A stretch of 64,000 bases of DNA. It comes from Blastocladiella emersonii ATCC 22665 (Eukaryota > Fungi > Blastocladiomycota). The stretch covers positions 1,674,001 to 1,738,000 of the forward strand of contig JANHCV010000004.1 of NCBI GenBank assembly GCA_025594325.1. The letters are read 5' to 3'. Positions 28,193 to 60,358 of the stretch are shown one piece after another. Numbering within the stretch: position 1 is the first letter of the stretch; each line of letters begins with the position of its first letter. A program made the translations under genes and the position numbers. Under the pieces are notes generated by a model, which did no database searches, was not told where the DNA came from, and saw only the letters and a list, made by a program, of their open reading frames with translations.

Positions 28193-28936
28193 GGTGGCGG
28201 CTGTGGGCGGATTACGCGTGAGCAACTCGGAAGATCACGGCCGGCGAGCTCACGAGGCAGGGCCGGCGCGTGCGTGCGAGACAGCGACGCGACGCGTGAA
28301 CTTGCGAGACGCGTGACGAGAACGTGCTCACGGCTTCCGCGCTTCCCGCGTTTCAGGCTGCGCGGGGACGCAAACCGTTGACGCCGCTGCGCCCGCGTCC
28401 TCGCTCCCCTCGACTCCCCTCGCCCTCTGCGACCACCGTCAAGTCCCCTCACGCAACTTGCTGCATTCGACGCGCCTCGCGCTGCACCAGCCTCGCCGAC
28501 CTCGTATGTCGCGCCGTCGCCGAGTCGCCGATGCATCGCACTGACACCCCGCCCGCCCGCTGCTCTCCAGGCTTCCAAGCTTTTCTTTTCTCAAGTCGCC
28601 CCGGTCCTCGTACCCACCGCGCACCCACACACACCCTCCTCGCCGTTTTCCTGCTTTCTGCTGCACCGATAGTCCGCCTGGTACGACGATCCCGCGCGCC
28701 CCTGATCTGCTCTCGCCTCGCCGCCAGCTCACACGACCCCGTCCGCGCGCACTCTCTAGGGATTATCGGCGTCCACGACAAAGCTGGCTAAACTCCAAGT
28801 CGTCATTCTTTTCTGCTCGGGAGACTTTCTCACGAGCTCGCCGCCCTCCAAGAAGGCCCGCAATCCCCCCTCCCGCACTGCTGCCGCCGGTGCCCTCCTC
28901 CTCGCCTCGTAACCCCACACCCACACCCCCGCCACC

Positions 28937-32397: not shown

Positions 32398-32539
32398 CGG
32401 GGATTGAAGTGGTGGTGGTGTTCAACCGTGGAATTGATAGTTTTCAAGCCATGAGCGACGCGCGTGCGAGACAAATCTGCGGCCTGAAAGCCGGCACTTC
32501 GTCGCCGCCCCCTTGTGTTACCGCTAGTCTCAAGTCACT

Positions 32540-38300: not shown

Positions 38301-39396
38301 GCCCGCCGTATTCGCAACCACGACGCGCAAAAGAGGTGGAGCGTGGAGTACCGTCGCGGAAACAAGTCGTTGTCGTCGTGAAGCACCGCTGGTCGCGGCA
38401 ACGGCGTCGAGGATGGACGCGAGTACAAGCGCGGAGGAAGAAGAACTTGAAGCAGGTCGAGTCGGCTACACGGCGGATGCACTCGCGCGGCTCGGTCAGT
38501 ATGATCCGCCGTGCGGACGGTCTCGTCTCGTCTCGTCTCGGCCACGCGTACCGATATCATCGAGTTGCTGTGTGATCCGCCCGCGGCCGCGGTTCTCCTT
38601 GAGCTTGATCTCGTCTCGGTCGACGCGTACATGACTTGGAAGCGGTGGTGGAGATTGGCGATGCAGCCGAGGCCGTCCGTGTACGTGTATGAGTACGAGG
38701 CGAGCAAAGCAGCTGCCGCGGACGAGCGAGCAACGACGCGGTAGCTCGTCGTTACGCTGAGCGCGCGCACGTACAAACACGAGTCGGGTCGATGCGAGCG
38801 AGGAGAAGTAGCGCGGCTTCCATCTACTAACGGTCGTGGAGAACAGACGTCAGCGATCCCGGATTCGCGCGCACGGGTGTGGTGGAGGGAAAGATGAGGG
38901 CGTCACGTTCCAGGTCTGCTACTCGAGTGCTGCTGAGTGTCGGTCGACTCGTTGGTGCCGTAGATCGTCGTCTCTCGTGGATCGTGATGAGCTCGCAGCC
39001 GAACGTCCCGCCGTTCATCTTGATCGTGTAGTTCGTGGCCGTCGCCTCTGCTACACGAAGCCGAAGTTGCTGACGATCACCGAGTCGTAGCCCTTGATCT
39101 CGCGGTCGAGATGCGCGCTCGAGTGCGCGCCGTGGTAGTCGTCAGAGTAGTCGTAGCTGCTGCTGTCGCGCTCTGACGGACCTCGGCCGGCCGTGTTCCG
39201 TTCGGGCAGAATCCATTCCTCTAGACTCGAGCAACGCGTCATTTTTCCCGTGACGACGCGGCGGCAGGAGATCGGTAGCGTACCTTCGGAGTGGTAGTAC
39301 CACCGCCCACTGGCGCAGCGGCGGCGGCGGACGCGAACACGGCAATGTCGGCTTGGCGGGGCGCGGATGATGTTGACCTGGATCGACTTGAAGCGC

Positions 39397-39634
39397 TGAC
39401 GGCGTGAGGCGGGATCACGATGTTGCGTGCGCACGCGATGGCCGTCGGACATGACAGCAGCGGAAGCGATCGCGAGAGTGGTCAGTCGGACCGTCGCGTG
39501 AGTACCTGGTCGAAGCACACACGATGGGTTTCTAGGGCAGCGCGACGAGCGTGCAAGTTGTGAGTGATCGGCTGTGCTCACCGCGGTATGCGACCTAAAG
39601 TGACACGTCCCAGGTTGAGGGTGACCTGCGACCC
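39397..39634 (+). repeat. ~240-bp dispersed direct repeat, copy B (partner 35078-35322)
   Basis: See copy A. Confidence 0.9.
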
Positions 39635-42352
39635 TGGAGCCTTAGTCGAGCGACTTGGGCCCTTGCACTTGCGCACGGGCAGAGCCACGCAATTCTTACT
39701 CCAACGGATGCTCGTGAGTGGGGGCGTCGGTCATGACGAAGCCGTAGTTGCGTACCGTCGTCCACGGAAGGCGAGCTTGCCCCTACACGAACAGCGACGC
39801 TCATGTCAGTTCGTGCCGTGCAACGGGTCTTGGATGCACGCGTACCGGGACACCGGGATGGACCCGCTCGCTGCTATCACGCGATCCATGTTGAGCTCGA
39901 CCTGCTTCTTGACTTACAGGTCACTCGGCCAGGGCGACGCGACGCGACGCGATGCGTGTGCGGCCGGAGCGATGTCGGCAAAGATGCGTCCCGCCCTCAC
40001 GTGTGTAGCGAGCCTGATGTCGGGACCGGCGCGAGGTTGTCGGGTGCGGTTGCCGGTCGTTGCGGGCCCGACTGACCGGCCATGAGGGAGAACTCCTCGA
40101 TGCCGCCGCCGTCTGGACGGACACGCGTAGCGTCAGTAGACATCTCGGCGCGTGCACCTTGTGTACCGGAGGTACAGCAGCCGAGCACGAGTGTAGCGCG
40201 ACGCTCGAGATGCAGGCGTTGAGCGCCGACCGGTCGGCATACACATGCTGACGCGCAAGTCAGTTCTGGTTCCGATCGGCGGCCGTGGCCGTGCGCGTAC
40301 CGAGCTTGAGCCCCTGCTGGGGCGTAGCCCTGAAGGGCGTAGCGACGCCGTGTCACTCGTCGTGCGGCGAGTAGTCGCGCTACGCGCTACGCGGAACGCT
40401 GGAACGCGCCCAGTGACAATGCGTCGACGGTGCCCACGCGTGTTGGCAGGCGTGCGCCCGGGTACGAATGGCGTGCACGTCGAGCGAGTTTGCGTGGTGA
40501 TGCAGAAGCGCGAGGTGGAAGGCGGGGAGTCGATAGCGTCAAGGAGTCAACCGGTTCGAAGAAGGAGCGTTGCCCGTAATGCGTAGGCGCGACGCGTTTC
40601 TGGAGACAAGCGTGACCGGCGCGCGCGCACGCTTCAAGGCGTCGCGTCTCCCACGGCCGCGAGACAATGCGTGACTTTCATGTGGCACTGTGACGCGGCA
40701 ACTTTCGCCCCGCACAGTTTTACCATGAATGCAAGGGCTTCCAACAAGTCGTGGTACTAGAGGCACTCGCACCATTTCGAACCAGAGGTCGCCCCGATCG
40801 CCTGCCGCCTCGGCACGCTCGGGAAGCTGTTTGCCGGTTTCGGTAGCCAGCGAGCATGAGAACTCCACCTTGGGCCCAGCTAGACGTCGTCCATGATACG
40901 CTGAGCCAGTCACGCGAGGAGATCCGCCTGCCGTCGCGTCGCCGCCCTGCGCCCGATCGCCACTGCTCTGCACTCGCACTGCAGACCTGCTCACATCCAC
41001 AACTCATCCACTCCAAGGCGCCCACAACCGACCGGGTTCCACAACCCGATCAGTGTCGCGGCTCCCCGTCCGCTTCGACCTCACGCGGGCCACTTGCCAC
41101 CGCGGCGCCAGTGGCCCCAACAGCGGCAGTCTTACATGTTGCTCCATGAGTCCGAGAGAAAGAGTTGGAATGAAGAGCGCTTCAACTGCTTCCCACAAGG
41201 ACGCGTTCCGTGCAACGCGCACGCAGTTGCCCCTTTACACGCGCCGCGTGTGAACACCGCGAACGCGGTCCGCGTTGGCTCACGCGATCGTCCCGCTTCC
41301 GTCTTCGCAATACGCTCGTAAAGCGTGTCCGAGCGTTGCTTCGCCGTTGTCCTGGCAGCTGCTCTCGCGGTGAGGCGTCGACGTGCCCGAGGCCGCCCAT
41401 GAACGCCGCGCCGAGCCAGCCGACGTCGTCTCACCCCTCACACCGATCTGCCGCGAACGCATCTAATGAAAACCAACCGCAACTTGCTGCATTTTGTCTT
41501 CCAGCTGTTCATGACTTTGTGGTTGTCGCGGACTGGCAGAATCCGGTGTTGACCGTGCAGCGCCTGAGTGCGCATGCCGCGCTCAGCAGGTTGGTCGGAT
41601 GGGCGTTCCCGCGCTCAGTGATCGGGCACAGCGGCATTGAGTCGTATGAGATCAAGGCGGTTGTGGACGGGCTTCACGGCGACTACCAGCGCGTCAAAGA
41701 GTTGCTGTACAAGCTTGAGAAGCGCCCGTTGACAAGCTGCGCGACGAAACGGCTGTCGCTGTCGCGATCACGTTGTTTAGTCCTTGGATCGCGCTCGGCG
41801 GTGCGGCCTCACTACGGCGCTGTTCTAAAGCTTGCGCGCCACGTTCGTCGCGCTTGGTACAACGCAGGAGGTCTTCGCGGGCAAGACGGGTAACCATTGG
41901 CGGCAGCTTCGGCCTCGGCAAGAACGCCGCCGCCATCGCGGCCGACCTCATGGAGAAGGCCGAGTCGTTTGTCGTCGGCCGCACGAGGGCCTGCCGCTGC
42001 TCGTCTCGGGCCGCGTCCAGGCGCCGCCCCGCGTGTTTGAGTGTAGTTCGAGCGCGCGCCAACCGCGCTGCATCGCCGCCCATCATGTATCATAACCCAT
42101 CCTGATGATCGTTAGATTGACCAAATTCATTCCGTGCGTTTCTGACCTGCCCTTTCCCATGTCGAGCGTGGTGCGCGCGGTGCGAACGGCCTTGAAACGC
42201 GACGCGATGTGGCTCAACTCGGCCAGCCGCTGCGCCACCTCGGGCTGACCCCCCTCGGACCACTCACCGCCTTGCTCATCTTGCTGTTCATAAGGGCGAC
42301 TGACTGGAACGGCGAGGATCGAAGAAGCTGAGAGCTCACTGAGCAGCTACGC

Positions 42353-42359
42353 TATAAAA
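42353..42359 (+). promoter_or_regulatory. TATA box
   Basis: TATAAAA about 95 nt upstream of ATG 42451. Confidence 0.6.
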
Positions 42360-42450
42360 CTCGGCCGAGCCCCCGCTCTCCTCCAGCTCCGCTTTCTAAC
42401 CTTCAACAGGATTCTCTCTCGACACAGACTCTGTTCCCCATACAACCACC

Positions 42451-43434
42451 ATGTCTGCCTCGATTGTTCTTGCTGCCCCCGTCTCGTCGTCGCCCAAGTC
42501 GCCCGTGTCCTCGGTCAAGCACTCGCTCCGCGTCGTGGTCGCTCCCGCGAACGGCACCAGTAGCTGCAACGTGCCCGACAACAAGGTCGCCGACAACAAG
42601 TGCGTTGTCGACTCGACGCCGACCCCCACGGTCGGCTCCCTCAAGGACCGGTTCGAGCAGCTCGCGTCTGCTCCCGGCTCGCCCACCAGCACCAGCCCGC
42701 GCTTGGCCTGCTCGCGGTCCTCGTACCAGGTCAACGTCGCCAATGTCGCCGGCAACAACGGCCAGCTCGTGCAGGGCGACTCCGCCAAGTCCAAGTCGGT
42801 TACGGCCGGTCCCGCGACGGCGGCGGCGGTCGTGCTCGAGTCGCTCGCCGGCGCAAATGTGGCAACCCTGCGCGCTTCCTTCGAGCCCACGGCCGCCGCT
42901 GTGGCTGCTGTCGCTCCCGTTACCCCGACTACCGAAGTTCCGGCTGCCGTCGACACCCTCGCGTCGACTGCGGCGCACGTCAAGGAGATGGGCTCGTGCC
43001 CCGCCCCTGTCGCTCCCATTCCCACCGAGAAGAAGCGTGGCACCGCTGGCAAAGTGCTGCGTTGGGTCCGCCGCCGTGCTGGCCACCGTGGCAGTGCGTC
43101 TCCGGCCGCGGTGGATCCCGAGGTGAAGGTGGTGGCGGCGGCGACGGAGGCCGTCGAGGCGAGCGTTATCAGCGGCGTCGGCTCGAACCTGGCCGTTCTC
43201 TCGGCCGAGCTCGGGTCCGATCAGACGCTGGTCGACAACCACGAGTCGATCTCCCGCTGGTCGTCCTTCAAGGCCCGGATCGGCAGCCTCCTGGGCGGTG
43301 CATCCAGTACCGTCAAGGCGTCCGCCGTTTCGTCCGAGTTCAAGCCGCACCCGATCAAGCGTGGCGGCGTCAAGGTTCTACCAACCACCCCGTCGCCTGT
43401 CGTGGTCCTGCGGTCCGCTGCCCTTGTTTCTTGA
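42451..43434 (+). CDS. Intronless orphan protein, 327 aa, Ser/Ala/Val/Pro-rich and probably disordered
   Basis: TATA box upstream, ACCACC-ATG context, GC3-rich codons, AT-rich 3' flank. Short motifs VGSLKDRFEQL, VATLRASFE and GGVKVLP. Confidence 0.8.
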   Translation: MSASIVLAAPVSSSPKSPVSSVKHSLRVVVAPANGTSSCNVPDNKVADNKCVVDSTPTPTVGSLKDRFEQLASAPGSPTSTSPRLACSRSSYQVNVANVAGNNGQLVQGDSAKSKSVTAGPATAAAVVLESLAGANVATLRASFEPTAAAVAAVAPVTPTTEVPAAVDTLASTAAHVKEMGSCPAPVAPIPTEKKRGTAGKVLRWVRRRAGHRGSASPAAVDPEVKVVAAATEAVEASVISGVGSNLAVLSAELGSDQTLVDNHESISRWSSFKARIGSLLGGASSTVKASAVSSEFKPHPIKRGGVKVLPTTPSPVVVLRSAALVS

Positions 43435-43562
43435 GTCTTCTCTTTTGTGTTTCAGTTCATGATACCTATCATCTAAACCGAAATCTCTCACATTTGCCTG
43501 TTTCGCGTGTAATTTGATCTCTACTTGTGTTCGTTCATTCTTTCGCGATGACCAGTTGACCT

Positions 43563-43975
43563 TGACATTGTGATGCGGTCCATGAATCGAATGTGAGTAA
43601 CATGTACCGGTGAGCTTTGATCATGTCATAACTGCAGCATGCTGTCGAGCCGGAGGCCATGTGAAAAGCGTCGCGTTGTTCACGTCGCGGCTGCGCCACC
43701 CAGGGCTAAGCCACCGCCACCGCCACTCGGTCGCCCCGCCGCTTTCTGCTTCCACGGCTTCCCTTCCGCTTGCATCTCCTTATCTCAGGTCGCCGTTTAC
43801 AACGGGCTGTGCGCCGGATTCCGGGAGGATTTGCAGCGGACGCTGACCGCACCCGCAGCTTTCCGGTAGAACGACGGCGCGCTGCGGCGCCGCCCCCACG
43901 TCGTTGGACCACGCGCCGTGGAAGTCGCCGCTATGCCTAGGATCCAGCGTGGGACTCTTCCCCCACGAAGACTCA
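43563..43975 (+). repeat. ~410-bp direct repeat, copy 1 (LTR-like TG...CA ends; partner 46195-46601)
   Basis: Shared blocks CATAACTGCAGCATGCTGTCGAGCCGG, GAAAAGCGTCGCGTTG, GCGGCTGCGCCACCC, GCAGCGGACGCTGACCGCACC.GCAGCTTTCCGGTAGAACGACGGCGCGC, ACGAAGACTCA. Confidence 0.9.
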
Positions 43976-44122
43976 GCGACTATTGACTCAATGGCTAAGA
44001 CGTGACCCTGACCTGATGATACGATGGTATGAGCAGAAAACACATCCTATAACCATGAACAAACACTGTGTGATCGAGAGTAAACCATGCAGAACACGCG
44101 GAGGGCAGCGAGCGCGCGTGCT

Positions 44123-44656
44123 TCTCCATTCACCCGCGCCCTGAGCCCCCAAGGGGACCGAGCCAGAAGCGCAGGGGAGAAGACACGCGACGGCACACAC
44201 GTTTCGTCTCCATTCACCCGCGTCCCGAGCCTCCATGGAGACCGAGCCGGACGACGCGGGGGAGAGTACTCGGCGGCGGCCACGGCTTGACGGCGGCCTC
44301 GCGTCACGATTGCGCTTTCGTCTCCATTTACCCGCGTCCCGAGCCTCCATGGAGACCTAGCCGGACGACGCGGGGGAGAGTACTCGGCGGCCTCGCACAC
44401 GTCCCGGGCCACTCCGTTCACCTGCGCCTCGAGCCCCCATGGGGGCCTAGCCGAGAACGCAGGGGAGAGCCCGTTTGCGACCACCTCTCGCGCATGTTCG
44501 TCTCCATTAACCCACGTCCCGAGCCCCCAAGGGGACCGAGCCGGTGACGCAGGGGAGAGTACTAGGCGGCAGGGATAGCGGCCTCGTGTGTGCTTTCGTC
44601 TCCATATACCCGCGCCCCGAACCCCCATGGGGGTCTAGCCGGGAGCGCGGGGGAGA
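44123..44656 (-). ncRNA. Tandem array of six ~58-nt covarying hairpin elements separated by variable linkers
   Basis: Cores at 44123-44180, 44207-44265, 44321-44379, 44411-44468, 44501-44558 and 44599-44656. All 17 inner base pairs are kept in all six copies on the minus strand, through six two-sided compensatory changes and G-U wobbles. The repeat itself is certain; the RNA interpretation is inferred. Confidence 0.7.
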
Positions 44657-46194
44657 GTACTCGGCGGCGGAATCGTGCGAGAGGACCGGCCGACTGCTCG
44701 TGGTGCTGCCACTCTTCTTGATCTGCGACGCGGTACCGCGCACGACTGCTGCGACACGATCGAGTCGCGCCGGACAGTTGAGGCCGGGCGGAGGACCGAG
44801 TTCTTGACGATGATGGTCTTGAGGTCTCAGCAGTCGCGGACACGTCGAGGCTGATGATGAAACACGACGCGCGACAGCGACCGCGACCGCGGCGGATCGA
44901 GTTGAACGAGCGTGCGCCTTGGCCTGGCCTTGCCGCAAAGCTTGGTCATGGTGACCGGAACTTGGTCTCGATGGTAGTTGTGGTGGCCGCGCGTCGATAC
45001 ACTACACGGCGAGAGTCGTGTATTAAAGATCCGAGTGCGTGGTGTGAGAGCGCGTCGTGATCGTACCTGTCGCGATACAACGCCGAGAACCGAGACTGGA
45101 GCTTGGGCAGGGCGACGAGTGTCTCGGCCAGCTCGACGTGAACTCGATGCCGAGCACGCCTTGGCCGTGATCCAGATCATGTCGATGGGTCAAGAGGGGG
45201 CGGGCGGAACTTGAGCACCGTCGTGGCCGTCATGTTGCGACGAGTGCAGCAGGTCCTTGAGGCGTCGCCGAGCCGTGGTCGTTGATGATCATGTGGCCGA
45301 CACGAAGGGGGATGCACAAGGCCGATCGAGTTGATATCATGGTGGACGGTGAAGATTTTATGAGCCCGAGAGGCAGCAGGAGCGACGGGAGCTCGAGTAT
45401 TTGTACGGCTGCGGGGTGTGCACACTGTAAGCACCGTGGCTGTCTGAGCAAGAAACTTGGTGCAAAACCAGCCTTTTTTGCACAAAACCCCGCATAACAG
45501 GAAAATGGCACAGTATTGTCTCGCACCACGACGGGCGAGCATCGCTGTTCCGTCGGAGCGGCTCGAGGCGGGTGCGCCCGCCATCGCGCCGCGGCGAGGA
45601 AATCCTCGATCGGTGCCGCCTGCGACGCAAAAAGTGCGAGACGGTGCCAAGAACCGTCCCGTCAGCGTCGGAGTGGCTCACGATGAGTCGCAGCCTGCGG
45701 AAGGAGGGAGACGCCGTGCGCGAGACGTGGCGCGACGCGTCCGACCGTCAGGTGACTTTCACGTGCACGATGCGAGACACTTTTGCAACGACGCGTTTGC
45801 GAGACAATACTTCGTGCACTCAAACGAAGTCATGGTCTTAACTTGTTACACGCGTTCGTTTGATGATGTTTCCGTTCGACGAAGCGTCGCGTCGCGTCGC
45901 GTCTTGCCGCGTTGTCTCGACTTGGGCCCGCGCTGCCTCAATGACACGACGCGGACTGCCCAGTGTGGTTAGTCGACACAATTAAGTCAACACTGCTTCT
46001 ATTTGCCGCAGGGACGCTATGAGAGTCTACTGCCCGTCCGACCCTGAGGTCCTTACTCTCGCTTGACGACTCGCCACGCGGTGGGGAAGCTTGACGCGAC
46101 GATACCGTTTTCCTGATGAAAACCAGCGACGACATGTGCGAGAAAGCTATATTGTTGTATCGCGCACGGTCCACTCATCCATCGACTTTGGCTT

Positions 46195-46601
46195 TGACGT
46201 TATGATGCGTTCCGTGATTCAGGTGCGAGTAACGTGTACCGTTGAGCTCCGATCAAGGCATAACTGCAGCATGCTGTCGAGCCGGTGGCCATTTGAAAAG
46301 CGTCGCGTTGCTCACGCAGCGGCTGCGCCACCCGGGGCTGAGCCACCGCCACTCGGACGCGCGTTGCGCGACGTTGCTTCCCGCTTCGCTCCCGCTTGCG
46401 TCGCGCTTTCTAAGGTCGCGTTCGACAGTGCACGGTTCACCGGATTCTGGGAGGATCCGCAGCGGACGCTGACCGCACCTGCAGCTTTCCGGTAGAACGA
46501 CGGCGCGCGGCGGTGCGTCCCCACTTCTGTGAACCGCACCCCGGGACGCCTCACCGCCACGCCTATGCTCTGGAGTCGAACGCTTCGCACACGAAGACTC
46601 A
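46195..46601 (+). repeat. ~410-bp direct repeat, copy 2 (partner 43563-43975)
   Basis: See copy 1. It ends 30 nt before the TATA box of the Q/S-rich gene. Confidence 0.9.
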
Positions 46602-46630
46602 AGGAATAGGTCGCACGCAGCGCCGAGTGC

Positions 46631-46636
46631 TATAAG
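46631..46636 (+). promoter_or_regulatory. TATA-like box
   Basis: TATAAG about 100 nt upstream of ATG 46734. Confidence 0.5.
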
Positions 46637-46733
46637 TACGGGCCGCTCCCCCGCTTCCTCAGACCGAGTACCGAGTTGATCATCAGCTCCTCGTTCAACG
46701 ACACCACGCCCACACTGCCAACACATCCTCGAG

Positions 46734-47195
46734 ATGACCTTCGGCCCGATTTTCATCCCTGCCGTCCAGTCGCTGTCCCAGTCGCAGTTCCAGGGCCAGT
46801 GGGGCGGCAACGGCGCCCAGCAGCAGTCCCAGTCGCAGTCGCAGTCGCAGTTCCAGGGCCACAACTCGGTCGATCCCGCGCAGCAGCAGTCCCAGTCCCA
46901 GTCGCAGACCCAGTTTGGCGACCACGGCGCGCAGTCGCAGGCCCAGTCGCAGTGGCAGCAGAACCACGGCAGCGACGCCTTCCAGGCCCAGAACCAGTGG
47001 CAGCAGCAGGGCCAGACGGGCAACCACAGCTCGGTCGACCACGGCGGCCTGTTCAGCGGCGACCCGTCCACCTGGGACCCGTCGCCCGCGGACGGCGGCG
47101 ACTTCCACATCCTGCCCGTGTTCGACCACCCCAACGGCGTCGACTTTGGCAGCGACGCCACGGCCATCCTGCCCATCCACAACGGCCTCGCGTAA
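46734..47195 (+). CDS. Small Q/S/G-rich low-complexity (prion-like) protein, 153 aa
   Basis: Strong GC3 codon bias (CAG/TCG/TCC). Repeats of QQQSQSQSQ(S/T)QF. Acidic/aromatic C-terminal third. TATA box upstream. Confidence 0.85.
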   Translation: MTFGPIFIPAVQSLSQSQFQGQWGGNGAQQQSQSQSQSQFQGHNSVDPAQQQSQSQSQTQFGDHGAQSQAQSQWQQNHGSDAFQAQNQWQQQGQTGNHSSVDHGGLFSGDPSTWDPSPADGGDFHILPVFDHPNGVDFGSDATAILPIHNGLA

Positions 47196-49118: not shown

Positions 49119-49706
49119 GATTCATGTATACACGCATCTTTCGCTGCTCTGTCGGATACACATGTCCAGCGCACCGCAGCCAGAGTTTTGGGTGGACCTT
49201 CGCAGTCGCCCCGTATGCCCACGCTCAAACTTGCACGCCTGCTGTGTGGTCACCGAGCAAGTGGGTCAGCGCGTGAGTACTCCGAGCAAGGGAGACTCCC
49301 GCTTTTGAGGTGAGAAGCGACAAAAATACTCGGCCTTGAGGCCACGCGCACGGATTCGGCAAGTCGCCGGGCCACACGTCGCGTGGCGCGACGCGTCTCG
49401 CACCCGTCACGTGATGTCTCGCGGTCAAATTCGGCCACGGAAGCAGGGCGGCTGCCCGGCCGTTCGGGCGTTTGGTGGGAGACATGCTCTTTGTTCGTCG
49501 AGAACAGGTACGTTCATCCGAAACTCACGGTCCGGATCAACGTCTTTTGCGTGAGAGGCATCGCGAACACGGCCGTGATCGCACACCAGGATTCCCCCCT
49601 GTGAGCCCCTTCGCTCCACCTGGATCAATGTATCTGCTGAACGAAGCATCAAGTAACTGCAAAGCCTCATTGCTGATATCGACACATCACCTGCGCTATC
49701 GCCACC

Positions 49707-59981: not shown

Positions 59982-60358
59982 TGCTGCGAGTTCATTCAAC
60001 GATTAATTGAGCGTGCACAAGCTCCTGAGGTTCCAGAAAAATAGGCCGCGCGATTTGCGAGACTCGCCAGTGCGATCGCAAGAACAGGCAAGCGCGCTCC
60101 GAAGCCGCGGAAAACGCGTCTCGCACCCGGCACGTGACGCGAGACGCGTCTCCCACGTCACGTGCGGCCTGCGAGACACTTTCGTGCGGGTCCAGAATCG
60201 CGCGAAGCTTGTTTTTTTCCGGCTCAATCAACGCCTTATTTTCGCACGTCTCCCGCGCGGACTTGACGCATGGCGCTCGAGGCGCCCTGTCCGATCAAGG
60301 GCGACGACTTGCGCACAGGCTCGCCTCCTTGTCGGCTCCTCGGACTTGATGAAACACA

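Follow-up and report, generated by a model that had tools for sequence, protein, structure and literature searches.

Six hairpin units on the minus strand of the Blastocladiella emersonii ATCC 22665 genome, lying within a 64,000-nucleotide stretch of DNA that was analyzed as a whole (hereafter the window), are most likely the terminal part of a structured RNA gene that has not been described before. Judged from pairing, strand bias, and rates of change, the gene may produce a non-coding RNA of the minus strand whose hairpins serve as putative multivalent protein-binding sites, and we put forward this role for the hairpins as a tentative one.

A repeat search of the window recovered six copies at 44117-44669, with start-to-start distances of 84, 114, 90, 90, and 98 nt and linkers of 25-55 nt between the cores, and the cores fall where a first-pass annotation of this DNA had placed them (array A; Table 1). 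The common minus-strand fold described in that annotation was likewise seen in all six units, which are identical in architecture: stems of 5 + 8 + 4 + 5 bp (22 bp), bulges of 1-2 nt, 4 nt, and a U-rich 5 nt, and a CAUG or CUUG loop. An RNAalifold consensus, obtained unprompted, is essentially the same fold, and the 22-bp bulged stem is present in all 17 units found in the genome. A minimum-free-energy fold of the whole array pairs arms from different units because the repeats are similar and self-complementary, and it is uninformative on co-transcriptional folding.

At the base of the stem, AGUAC on the 5' side and CGAA(A) on the 3' side accompany units 2, 3, 5, and 6 and their orthologues, bearing out the earlier report of these flanks at four units, while in units 1 and 4 5-10 Watson-Crick pairs stand in their place and are kept across arrays. 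Unit C2 carries an extra C-G pair between the stem and the AGUAC/CGAA module. These swaps, with a plain helix in units 1 and 4 where the other units carry the module, suggest that the two flanking strands face each other, and they fit a predicted loop-E-like internal loop in which the pair adjoining the stem would be C-C. The loop E/sarcin-ricin (bulged-G) motif occurs in 5S rRNA, 28S rRNA, and PSTVd; AGUA opposite GAA at the base of units 2, 3, 5, and 6 is like it, whereas the stem-side closing pair would be C-C in B. emersonii and not C-G. A lower stem beneath the AGUAC/CGAA loop was considered and set aside as unconvincing, with merely two to three possible pairs.

Table 1. Hairpin units, arrays, and surrounding features. 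Coordinates are window positions unless a contig is named; C16 positions 1674001-1738000 are the window.
Feature	Coordinates	Core	Strand	Description
Unit 6	44588-44668	44599-44657	-	First in minus-strand order; base AGUAC/CGAAA (loop-E-like); A-U at 39:52
Unit 5	44490-44570	44501-44559	-	Tandem U-G/G-U wobbles at 21:62 and 22:61; loop-E-like base
Unit 4	44400-44480	44411-44469	-	Base extended by GGGC/GCCC, not AGUAC/CGAA; U-A at 31:56 and 21:62
Unit 3	44310-44390	44321-44379	-	U-A at 42:49
Unit 2	44196-44276	44207-44265	-	Recent 114-bp tandem duplicate of unit 3; absent from array C
Unit 1	44112-44190	44123-44181	-	Last in minus-strand order; base extended by ~8 Watson-Crick pairs; U-A at 32:55
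Array A	44112-44668 (C16)		-	Six units
Array B	C16:1364710-1365265			R1 model match
Array C	C1:2779192-2779666			R1 model match; units C1-C5
AT-richer segment	43976-44111		-	~130 bp downstream of array; candidate 3'-end/termination region
Non-coding leader	44669-45500		-	Between promoter-like block and array; patches conserved with locus C
Promoter-like block	45501-45811		.	GCGAGAC x5, ACGCGT, TCACGTG, inverted repeat; A-C homology ends here

The first-pass annotation had proposed a covariance-model search of the genome, and a model built from the units (R1) and run against the whole assembly (32.65 Mb, 21 contigs) found exactly 17 units, scoring 80-99 bits, in three paralogous arrays. Arrays A and B are parts of a segmental duplication of 7 kb, in which window 39175-46180 and C16:1359779-1366779 are 92.35% identical, and the homology between A and C is a colinear stretch of ~1.7 kb alone (44104-45805). 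The nearest relatives of the units are found by position (A1/B1/C1, A4/B4/C3, A5/B5/C4, and A6/B6/C5), at 81-99% identity and at 98% for unit 6 and its array C orthologue, and units within one array are 61-83% identical except for units 2 and 3 at ~90%. In that pair, identity is 97% over the 76-nt repeat copy and 91% over the aligned unit of 81 nt; array C has a single unit in its place. This grouping by position and not by array indicates that the three arrays arose as whole-array duplications of a five-unit ancestor, evidently without homogenization since. At locus C, a 4.2-kb gap between real genes is non-coding and contains the conserved unit by itself, a short way downstream of an S1/P1 nuclease gene (H9P43_001034). 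A link to the nuclease was rejected, since the gene sits beside array C alone and no remnant of it occurs near arrays A and B, and we treat the adjacency as coincidence.

We aligned all 17 units, giving 374 pair cells over 22 pairs, and compared them with 500 column shuffles and with slid partners. In the alignment, 99.2% of the cells are paired, against 95.0% in the shuffles, none of which reached the observed value, and 31-62% with slid partners. Two-sided changes occur at 7 of the 22 pairs, a number equalled in 4 of the 500 shuffles. They include each of the six that had been claimed from array A, namely C-G to U-A at 21:62, 31:56, and 32:55 (units 4 and 1), U-A versus C-G at 25:58 and 42:49, and G-C to A-U at 39:52 (unit 6), with a seventh among the 17 units. 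Helices 2-4 are fully paired in every unit; the 17 inner pairs, annotated as intact in six copies, are thus unbroken throughout the genome, and the outermost pair, 14:74, is the only one ever broken. Because the 17 units are related to one another, changes were also counted between orthologous units. All changes in the 17 inner pairs retain pairing in this comparison, and the C-G to U-A double change at 21:62 (A4 against B4), which postdates the A/B duplication, makes up two of only five differences between the A and B cores.

The fold is specific to the minus strand, as had been claimed from array A. G-U pairs fill 47 cells at eight pair positions and A-C combinations fill none (binomial p = 0.008), the G-U at 34:53, which adjoins the 4-nt bulge, is found unchanged in all 17 units and not just in the six where it had been noticed, and the minus strand is the more stable in every unit (mean -31.9 vs -27.4 kcal/mol). 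Several unpaired residues are also invariant in 17 of 17 units: C44, U46, and G47 in the loop, G38, which closes the 4-nt bulge, and U65 and A68 in the U-rich bulge. Their constancy points to probable sequence-specific recognition besides recognition of shape. The first 7-8 nt of the 5' arm, starting with U, are the same in every unit, and covariation is confined to the apical half. These patterns support selection on a single-stranded fold of the minus strand rather than minisatellite drift, a conclusion that the first-pass annotation had reached from one array and that the two further paralogous arrays strengthen.

The hairpin cores are under purifying selection. Between arrays A and B, 5 of 354 core sites differ (1.4%), compared with 10 of 180 linker sites and 216 of 2577 flanking sites (8.4%), and the cores are distinguished from the flanks at p = 8e-8 and from the linkers at p = 0.01 (Fisher). 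Identity along the A/B duplicate is mosaic, with a 100% identical patch at 39.4-40.2 kb; gene conversion therefore occurs there, which weakens the A/B comparison but not that between A and C. In the latter, identity is 89% in the cores (11% divergence), 82% in the linkers, 71% in the 5' block (45501-45811), and 63.5% over the aligned columns of the leader (46% counting gaps), and the outer flanks, at 37-40%, are at the random level.

The conserved sequence is non-coding. No codon-position GC signal was found across 43450-46700, where the three positions differ by at most 0.18, whereas real genes in the window have a GC3 of ~0.94 (0.94 in Vps35) and a GC2 of ~0.43; within the array, the GC content of the three codon positions varies little, staying between 0.63 and 0.73. 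A protein-coding tandem repeat would explain why the array is crossed by long ORFs on both strands (193 aa on the minus strand, 157 aa on the plus strand), with five units spanned, why four of the spacings (84, 114, 90, and 90 nt) are divisible by three, and why Pfam DUF7241 gives a weak, sub-threshold match (23.4 bits against a cut-off of 27, with 19 residues covered). However, no ORF is common to the three arrays, every frame being broken in at least one of them, the unit spacing of array C does not run in threes, and the translated array has no match among 1.84 billion protein representatives. Together with the flat codon-position GC, these results effectively refute a coding origin. Nor did the translated array ORF correspond to any exact protein record.

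The first-pass annotation could not match the hairpins to hammerhead, HDV-like, twister, hairpin ribozyme, tRNA, SRP, or CRISPR repeats, and no Rfam family, with the pistol, hatchet, snoRNA, and miRNA families among those covered, reaches its gathering score at the array. In the whole window the sole gathering-score match in Rfam 15 is a tRNA at 300-371; at E <= 10 the interval 43900-44900 yields only mir-202 (16.8 bits vs a gathering score of 51) and CRISPR-DR20 (15.2 vs 42), and 44600-46300 yields nothing relevant. A CRISPR array was rejected on the grounds that the units are mostly 61-83% identical, that the 25-55-nt linkers are conserved between arrays, and that the genome is eukaryotic. 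A Fanzor/TnpB guide (omega RNA) was also rejected: the genome has 36 PF07282 matches, none of them in the window, in the duplicated segment, or near array C, and the match nearest array B (C16:1357892) is outside the 7-kb duplicate. Individual Pol III genes were discarded as well, as the linkers are without T-runs and array B does not share the one that follows array A.

Relatives were also sought beyond B. emersonii. A DNA pattern of the invariant columns matches all six units of array A and has no match in metagenome, viral, or prokaryote genome contigs, and a search with R1 of 57.7 kb at the S1/P1 orthologue loci of Catenaria anguillulae and Allomyces javanicus gave a best score of 11.3 bits (E = 0.5). 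The hairpin family thus appears, so far, to be known from the B. emersonii genome alone, and as no orthologue was found outside it, the conservation described here is conservation among paralogues.

On the minus strand, a conserved, gene-like non-coding unit of ~1.7 kb has array A at its 3' end. The first-pass annotation had considered that the array might belong to the 3' part of a minus-strand gene, now decayed, at 44.7-45.4 kb; the 3'-terminal placement stands, but no codon-position GC signal is present in that interval. At the other end of the unit, the promoter-like block has one GCGAGAC copy on the minus strand (45518-45524) and four on the plus strand, and it holds a perfect 14-nt inverted repeat (45512-45525 and 45798-45811). 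Elsewhere in the window, at 49.4 and 60.1 kb, there are very similar modules of these motifs, and single copies stand upstream of genes, in gene-sense orientation, at 32466 and 5313, with further copies at 28276/28304. On the strength of this likeness and of the gene-upstream copies, we read 45501-45811 as a probable promoter region, with motifs of mixed orientation, four of the five GCGAGAC copies pointing away from the array. Beyond the array, the AT-richer segment holds CATGAACAAACAC (44054-44066), a sequence that arrays B and C preserve in part, and is convergent with the end (43975) of a neighboring multi-copy element. Taken together, the three loci fit a small family of predicted non-coding genes, each with a promoter-like block, a weakly constrained leader, and a constrained array of five to six hairpins.

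From these features we infer transcription, the two ends of the transcript, and protein binding. A lineage-specific non-coding gene on the minus strand would start near the promoter-like block, at ~45.5-45.8 kb, cross the poorly constrained leader of ~0.8 kb, enter the 560-nt array, whose six hairpins would be its 3' module, and end in the AT-richer stretch at ~44.0-44.1 kb. Each unit would fold locally into a 22-bp bulged hairpin on a loop-E-like or Watson-Crick base, the units would each be a docking site for the same RNA-binding protein, one that recognizes structure as well as sequence, and the RNA could then serve as a multivalent scaffold, a sponge, or a localization RNA. We propose docking sites because pairing, the invariant G-U, and unpaired residues (loop C.UG, bulge G, and bulge U..A) are kept across 17 units at three loci. 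A multivalent protein-binding RNA is favored because both arms are conserved along with loop and bulge residues, because the features of individual units are old, and because copy number has been kept. No candidate binding protein is linked to the three loci.

Multivalent protein docking in non-coding Pol II transcripts is exemplified by the Xist A-repeat and by the 3' stem-loops of roX1 and roX2 (roX boxes). Like these, the array repeats a short conserved hairpin core several times, has linkers that vary, and is located towards one end of the proposed transcript, and of the features expected of an lncRNA stem-loop module, array A shows the repeat architecture and the non-coding status. Unlike them, the B. 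emersonii hairpins are longer (22 bp, with three bulges), have no sequence or Rfam relation to either, and belong to an early-diverging fungus. In sponge RNAs of the CsrB/RsmZ type, repeated hairpins share unpaired residues and copy number sets binding capacity. The resemblance here is that many similar short hairpins with the same unpaired residues lie on one RNA, in this case a predicted one, whereas CsrB and RsmZ are bacterial and without homology to the array, and the B. emersonii hairpins are much longer and have conserved internal bulges.

The main rival to a protein-binding RNA is a polycistronic precursor that is cut at the hairpin bases to release hairpin RNAs of ~60-80 nt or milRNA-like RNAs of ~21-24 nt loaded into Argonaute, which we consider less likely. 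The Dicer-substrate cluster suggested in the first-pass annotation is of this kind, and part of that suggestion stands: the genome has four Piwi-domain Argonaute loci, and the 22-bp upper stem falls within the ~21-24 bp expected of a duplex. The layout, with six ~60-nt hairpins at 84-114-nt spacing and variable spacers, resembles that of a polycistronic miRNA or snoRNA cluster, the constant start of the 5' arm and the apical covariation also speak for a precursor, and the conserved stem-base motifs could mark cut sites. As in miR-17~92 and fungal milRNA clusters, about six paralogous hairpins of ~60 nt lie within ~0.6-0.8 kb and combine a ~22-bp stem with a conserved 5' end of the 5' arm. On the processing enzymes the reading is weaker, neither Dicer nor Drosha nor RdRP having been detected in B. 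emersonii. In a genome profile search that scores exons singly, and that divergent genes can escape, no canonical RNase III Dicer was found, the sole RNase III-domain gene being a small one that resembles the mitochondrial ribosomal protein mL44, and Dicer_dimer scored a sub-threshold 21.9 bits. RdRP gave no match in the genome, with a control that was also silent, and because exons are scored singly we take the absence of both Dicer and RdRP as provisional. A survey has recorded the loss of Dicer in some species of Blastocladiomycota (PMC12663654). The small RNAs of such a precursor might arise without canonical Dicer, but its conservation is of another kind from that of miRNA paralogues, in which the guide arm is constrained and the other arm and the loop may vary; here all 17 units keep both arms, three loop residues out of four, and several residues of the bulges. 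A 4-nt loop such as that of the array is small for known Dicer or Drosha substrates, and the mir-202 score is well short of gathering. Slightly less likely again, in our estimate, is a three-locus family of undescribed structured non-coding RNA whose hairpins either feed an Argonaute pathway independent of canonical Dicer or nucleate a multivalent RNA-protein assembly peculiar to this zoosporic fungus.

Two further readings dispense with a functional RNA, and we hold both to be improbable. In one, the array is a non-functional hairpin satellite or old foldback repeat whose pairing is kept by gene conversion from arm to arm or copy to copy, and its setting would suit this: the arrays lie in gene-poor, partly duplicated sequence, conversion patches mark the A/B duplicate, and the family is confined to one species within the collections searched. 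Yet arm-to-arm conversion, which the first-pass annotation had named as a null model, produces perfect palindromes and would erase asymmetric bulges and wobbles; it is excluded as the source of the pairing, as the asymmetric bulges and the invariant G-U persist in all 17 units and the wobbles are all of the minus-strand type. Copy-to-copy homogenization is contradicted by the clustering of units by position across arrays, and core identity is still 89% between A and C, where the outer flanks match no better than random sequence. The other, which we rate lower still, is that the fold acts in single-stranded DNA, where a recombinase, an HUH nuclease, or a replication factor would recognize the hairpin on one strand only. 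Because folded single-stranded DNA sites also tolerate G-T wobbles and extrahelical bases, strand bias alone does not separate RNA from DNA. Integron attC sites, the folded single-stranded DNA recombination sites that lie between bacterial gene cassettes and are used with an integrase, resemble the array in that structure prevails over sequence, the fold is strand-specific, bases are extrahelical, and sites occur in arrays; the B. emersonii loci differ in being eukaryotic and in having neither integrase nor gene cassettes. The recognition hairpins of an HUH/Helitron-type nuclease that the first-pass annotation had envisaged found no positional support, since the 13 Helitron_like_N matches in the genome include none near the arrays, of which there are only three loci, and no Helitron Rep lies near any of them. 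Fanzor/TnpB genes are outside the duplicated segment and absent from the vicinity of arrays A and C, the three loci are static and colinear and show neither terminal repeats nor target duplications nor traces of mobility, and the LTR-like repeats around array A belong to the neighboring multi-copy element.

To our knowledge, the early-diverging flagellated fungi have yielded very few structured non-coding RNAs, and our literature search found none from Blastocladiomycota; for B. emersonii itself it found ESTs and no RNA-seq study. If the protein-binding or precursor RNA proposed here is real, it would give Blastocladiomycota its first described family of structured regulatory RNA and would offer an entry to RNA-protein or small-RNA biology in a lineage with Argonautes and no detectable canonical Dicer. 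The comparative evidence is unusually clean for a single genome, combining covariation, wobble bias, and slower change than the flanks, and the candidate transcription unit is defined closely enough to be directly testable. Should the unit prove not to be transcribed, a strand-specific fold at the DNA level would be the reading that this evidence suggests, and such a fold would be rarer still in a eukaryote.

Finally, the neighbor of array A is a repeat in its own right. Direct repeats of ~420 bp on either side of the array (43556-43975 and 46188-46601) had raised the prospect of an LTR or TRIM carrier, which was rejected: they are the tail of a 1.68-kb element (42300-43975), array B is without the right repeat, and array C is without both. 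The element matches more than 25 other stretches without an array; about seven of these, on contig C16, are near full length, and some twenty others, on C15, C11, and C16, are partial.

Arrays A and B, the window's six-unit hairpin array and its counterpart on the same contig, lie within a 7-kb segmental duplication whose two copies are ~354 kb apart. The copies are 100% identical over 39.4-40.2 kb but 85-90% identical over the rest of their length, and this mosaic suggests patchy gene conversion between them. Array C, on contig C1, shares a 4.5-kb spacer with an S1/P1 nuclease gene, and this spacer separates 3.6-kb inverted repeats of 99.9% identity, each of which carries an identical 520-aa MFS transporter gene.

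The 1.68-kb element beside array A belongs to a multi-copy family, for which a genome search listed ~7 near-full-length copies on contig C16 (82-90% identity) and ~20 partial matches on C15, C11, and C16 (68-78% identity); a partial copy of the element's tail is also present in the window. With a GC3 of 0.8-0.93, the coding signal of the ORF in this element is moderate, and a match to the ORF is lacking in Pfam. GCGAGAC, ACGCGT (MCB-like), and (T)CACGTG are combined in a recurring intergenic module, single copies of which are found upstream of genes and in the orientation of the gene, and this module probably serves widely as a promoter element in B. emersonii.

The genome holds four Argonaute (Piwi-domain) loci, while neither a canonical Dicer nor an RdRP was detected in a whole-genome search that scores exons singly and can miss divergent genes. 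The only RNase III-domain gene in the genome looks like mitochondrial ribosomal protein mL44, and a match to Dicer_dimer was sub-threshold.

Coordinates of features in the window (plain positions), on contigs (C), and in stretches of C1 around array C (L)
Feature	Position	Strand
7-kb duplication, copy with array A	39175-46180	
7-kb duplication, copy with array B	C16:1359779-1366779	
1.68-kb element	42300-43975	
ORF of 1.68-kb element	42451-43434	plus
Partial copy of element tail	46188-46601	
Intergenic module	45501-45811, 49395-49422, 60057-60177, 28276-28310, 32466	
3.6-kb inverted repeats	C1:2774687-2778304 (L011:5687-9304), C1:2782829-2786446 (L013:3829-7446)	
S1/P1 nuclease gene	L013:2444-3301	minus
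Argonaute loci	C17:1404132, C17:1586553, C11:2504843, C20:476549	
RNase III-domain gene	C1:2959691-2960185	
Dicer_dimer match	C16:1047555	
Q-S-rich ORF	46734-47195	

In a further ORF in the window, which is rich in Q-S repeats, the GC signal by codon position is very strong, with a GC3 of 0.96-0.97; part of this signal may be due to the tandem GCAGTC hexamer repeats of the ORF.
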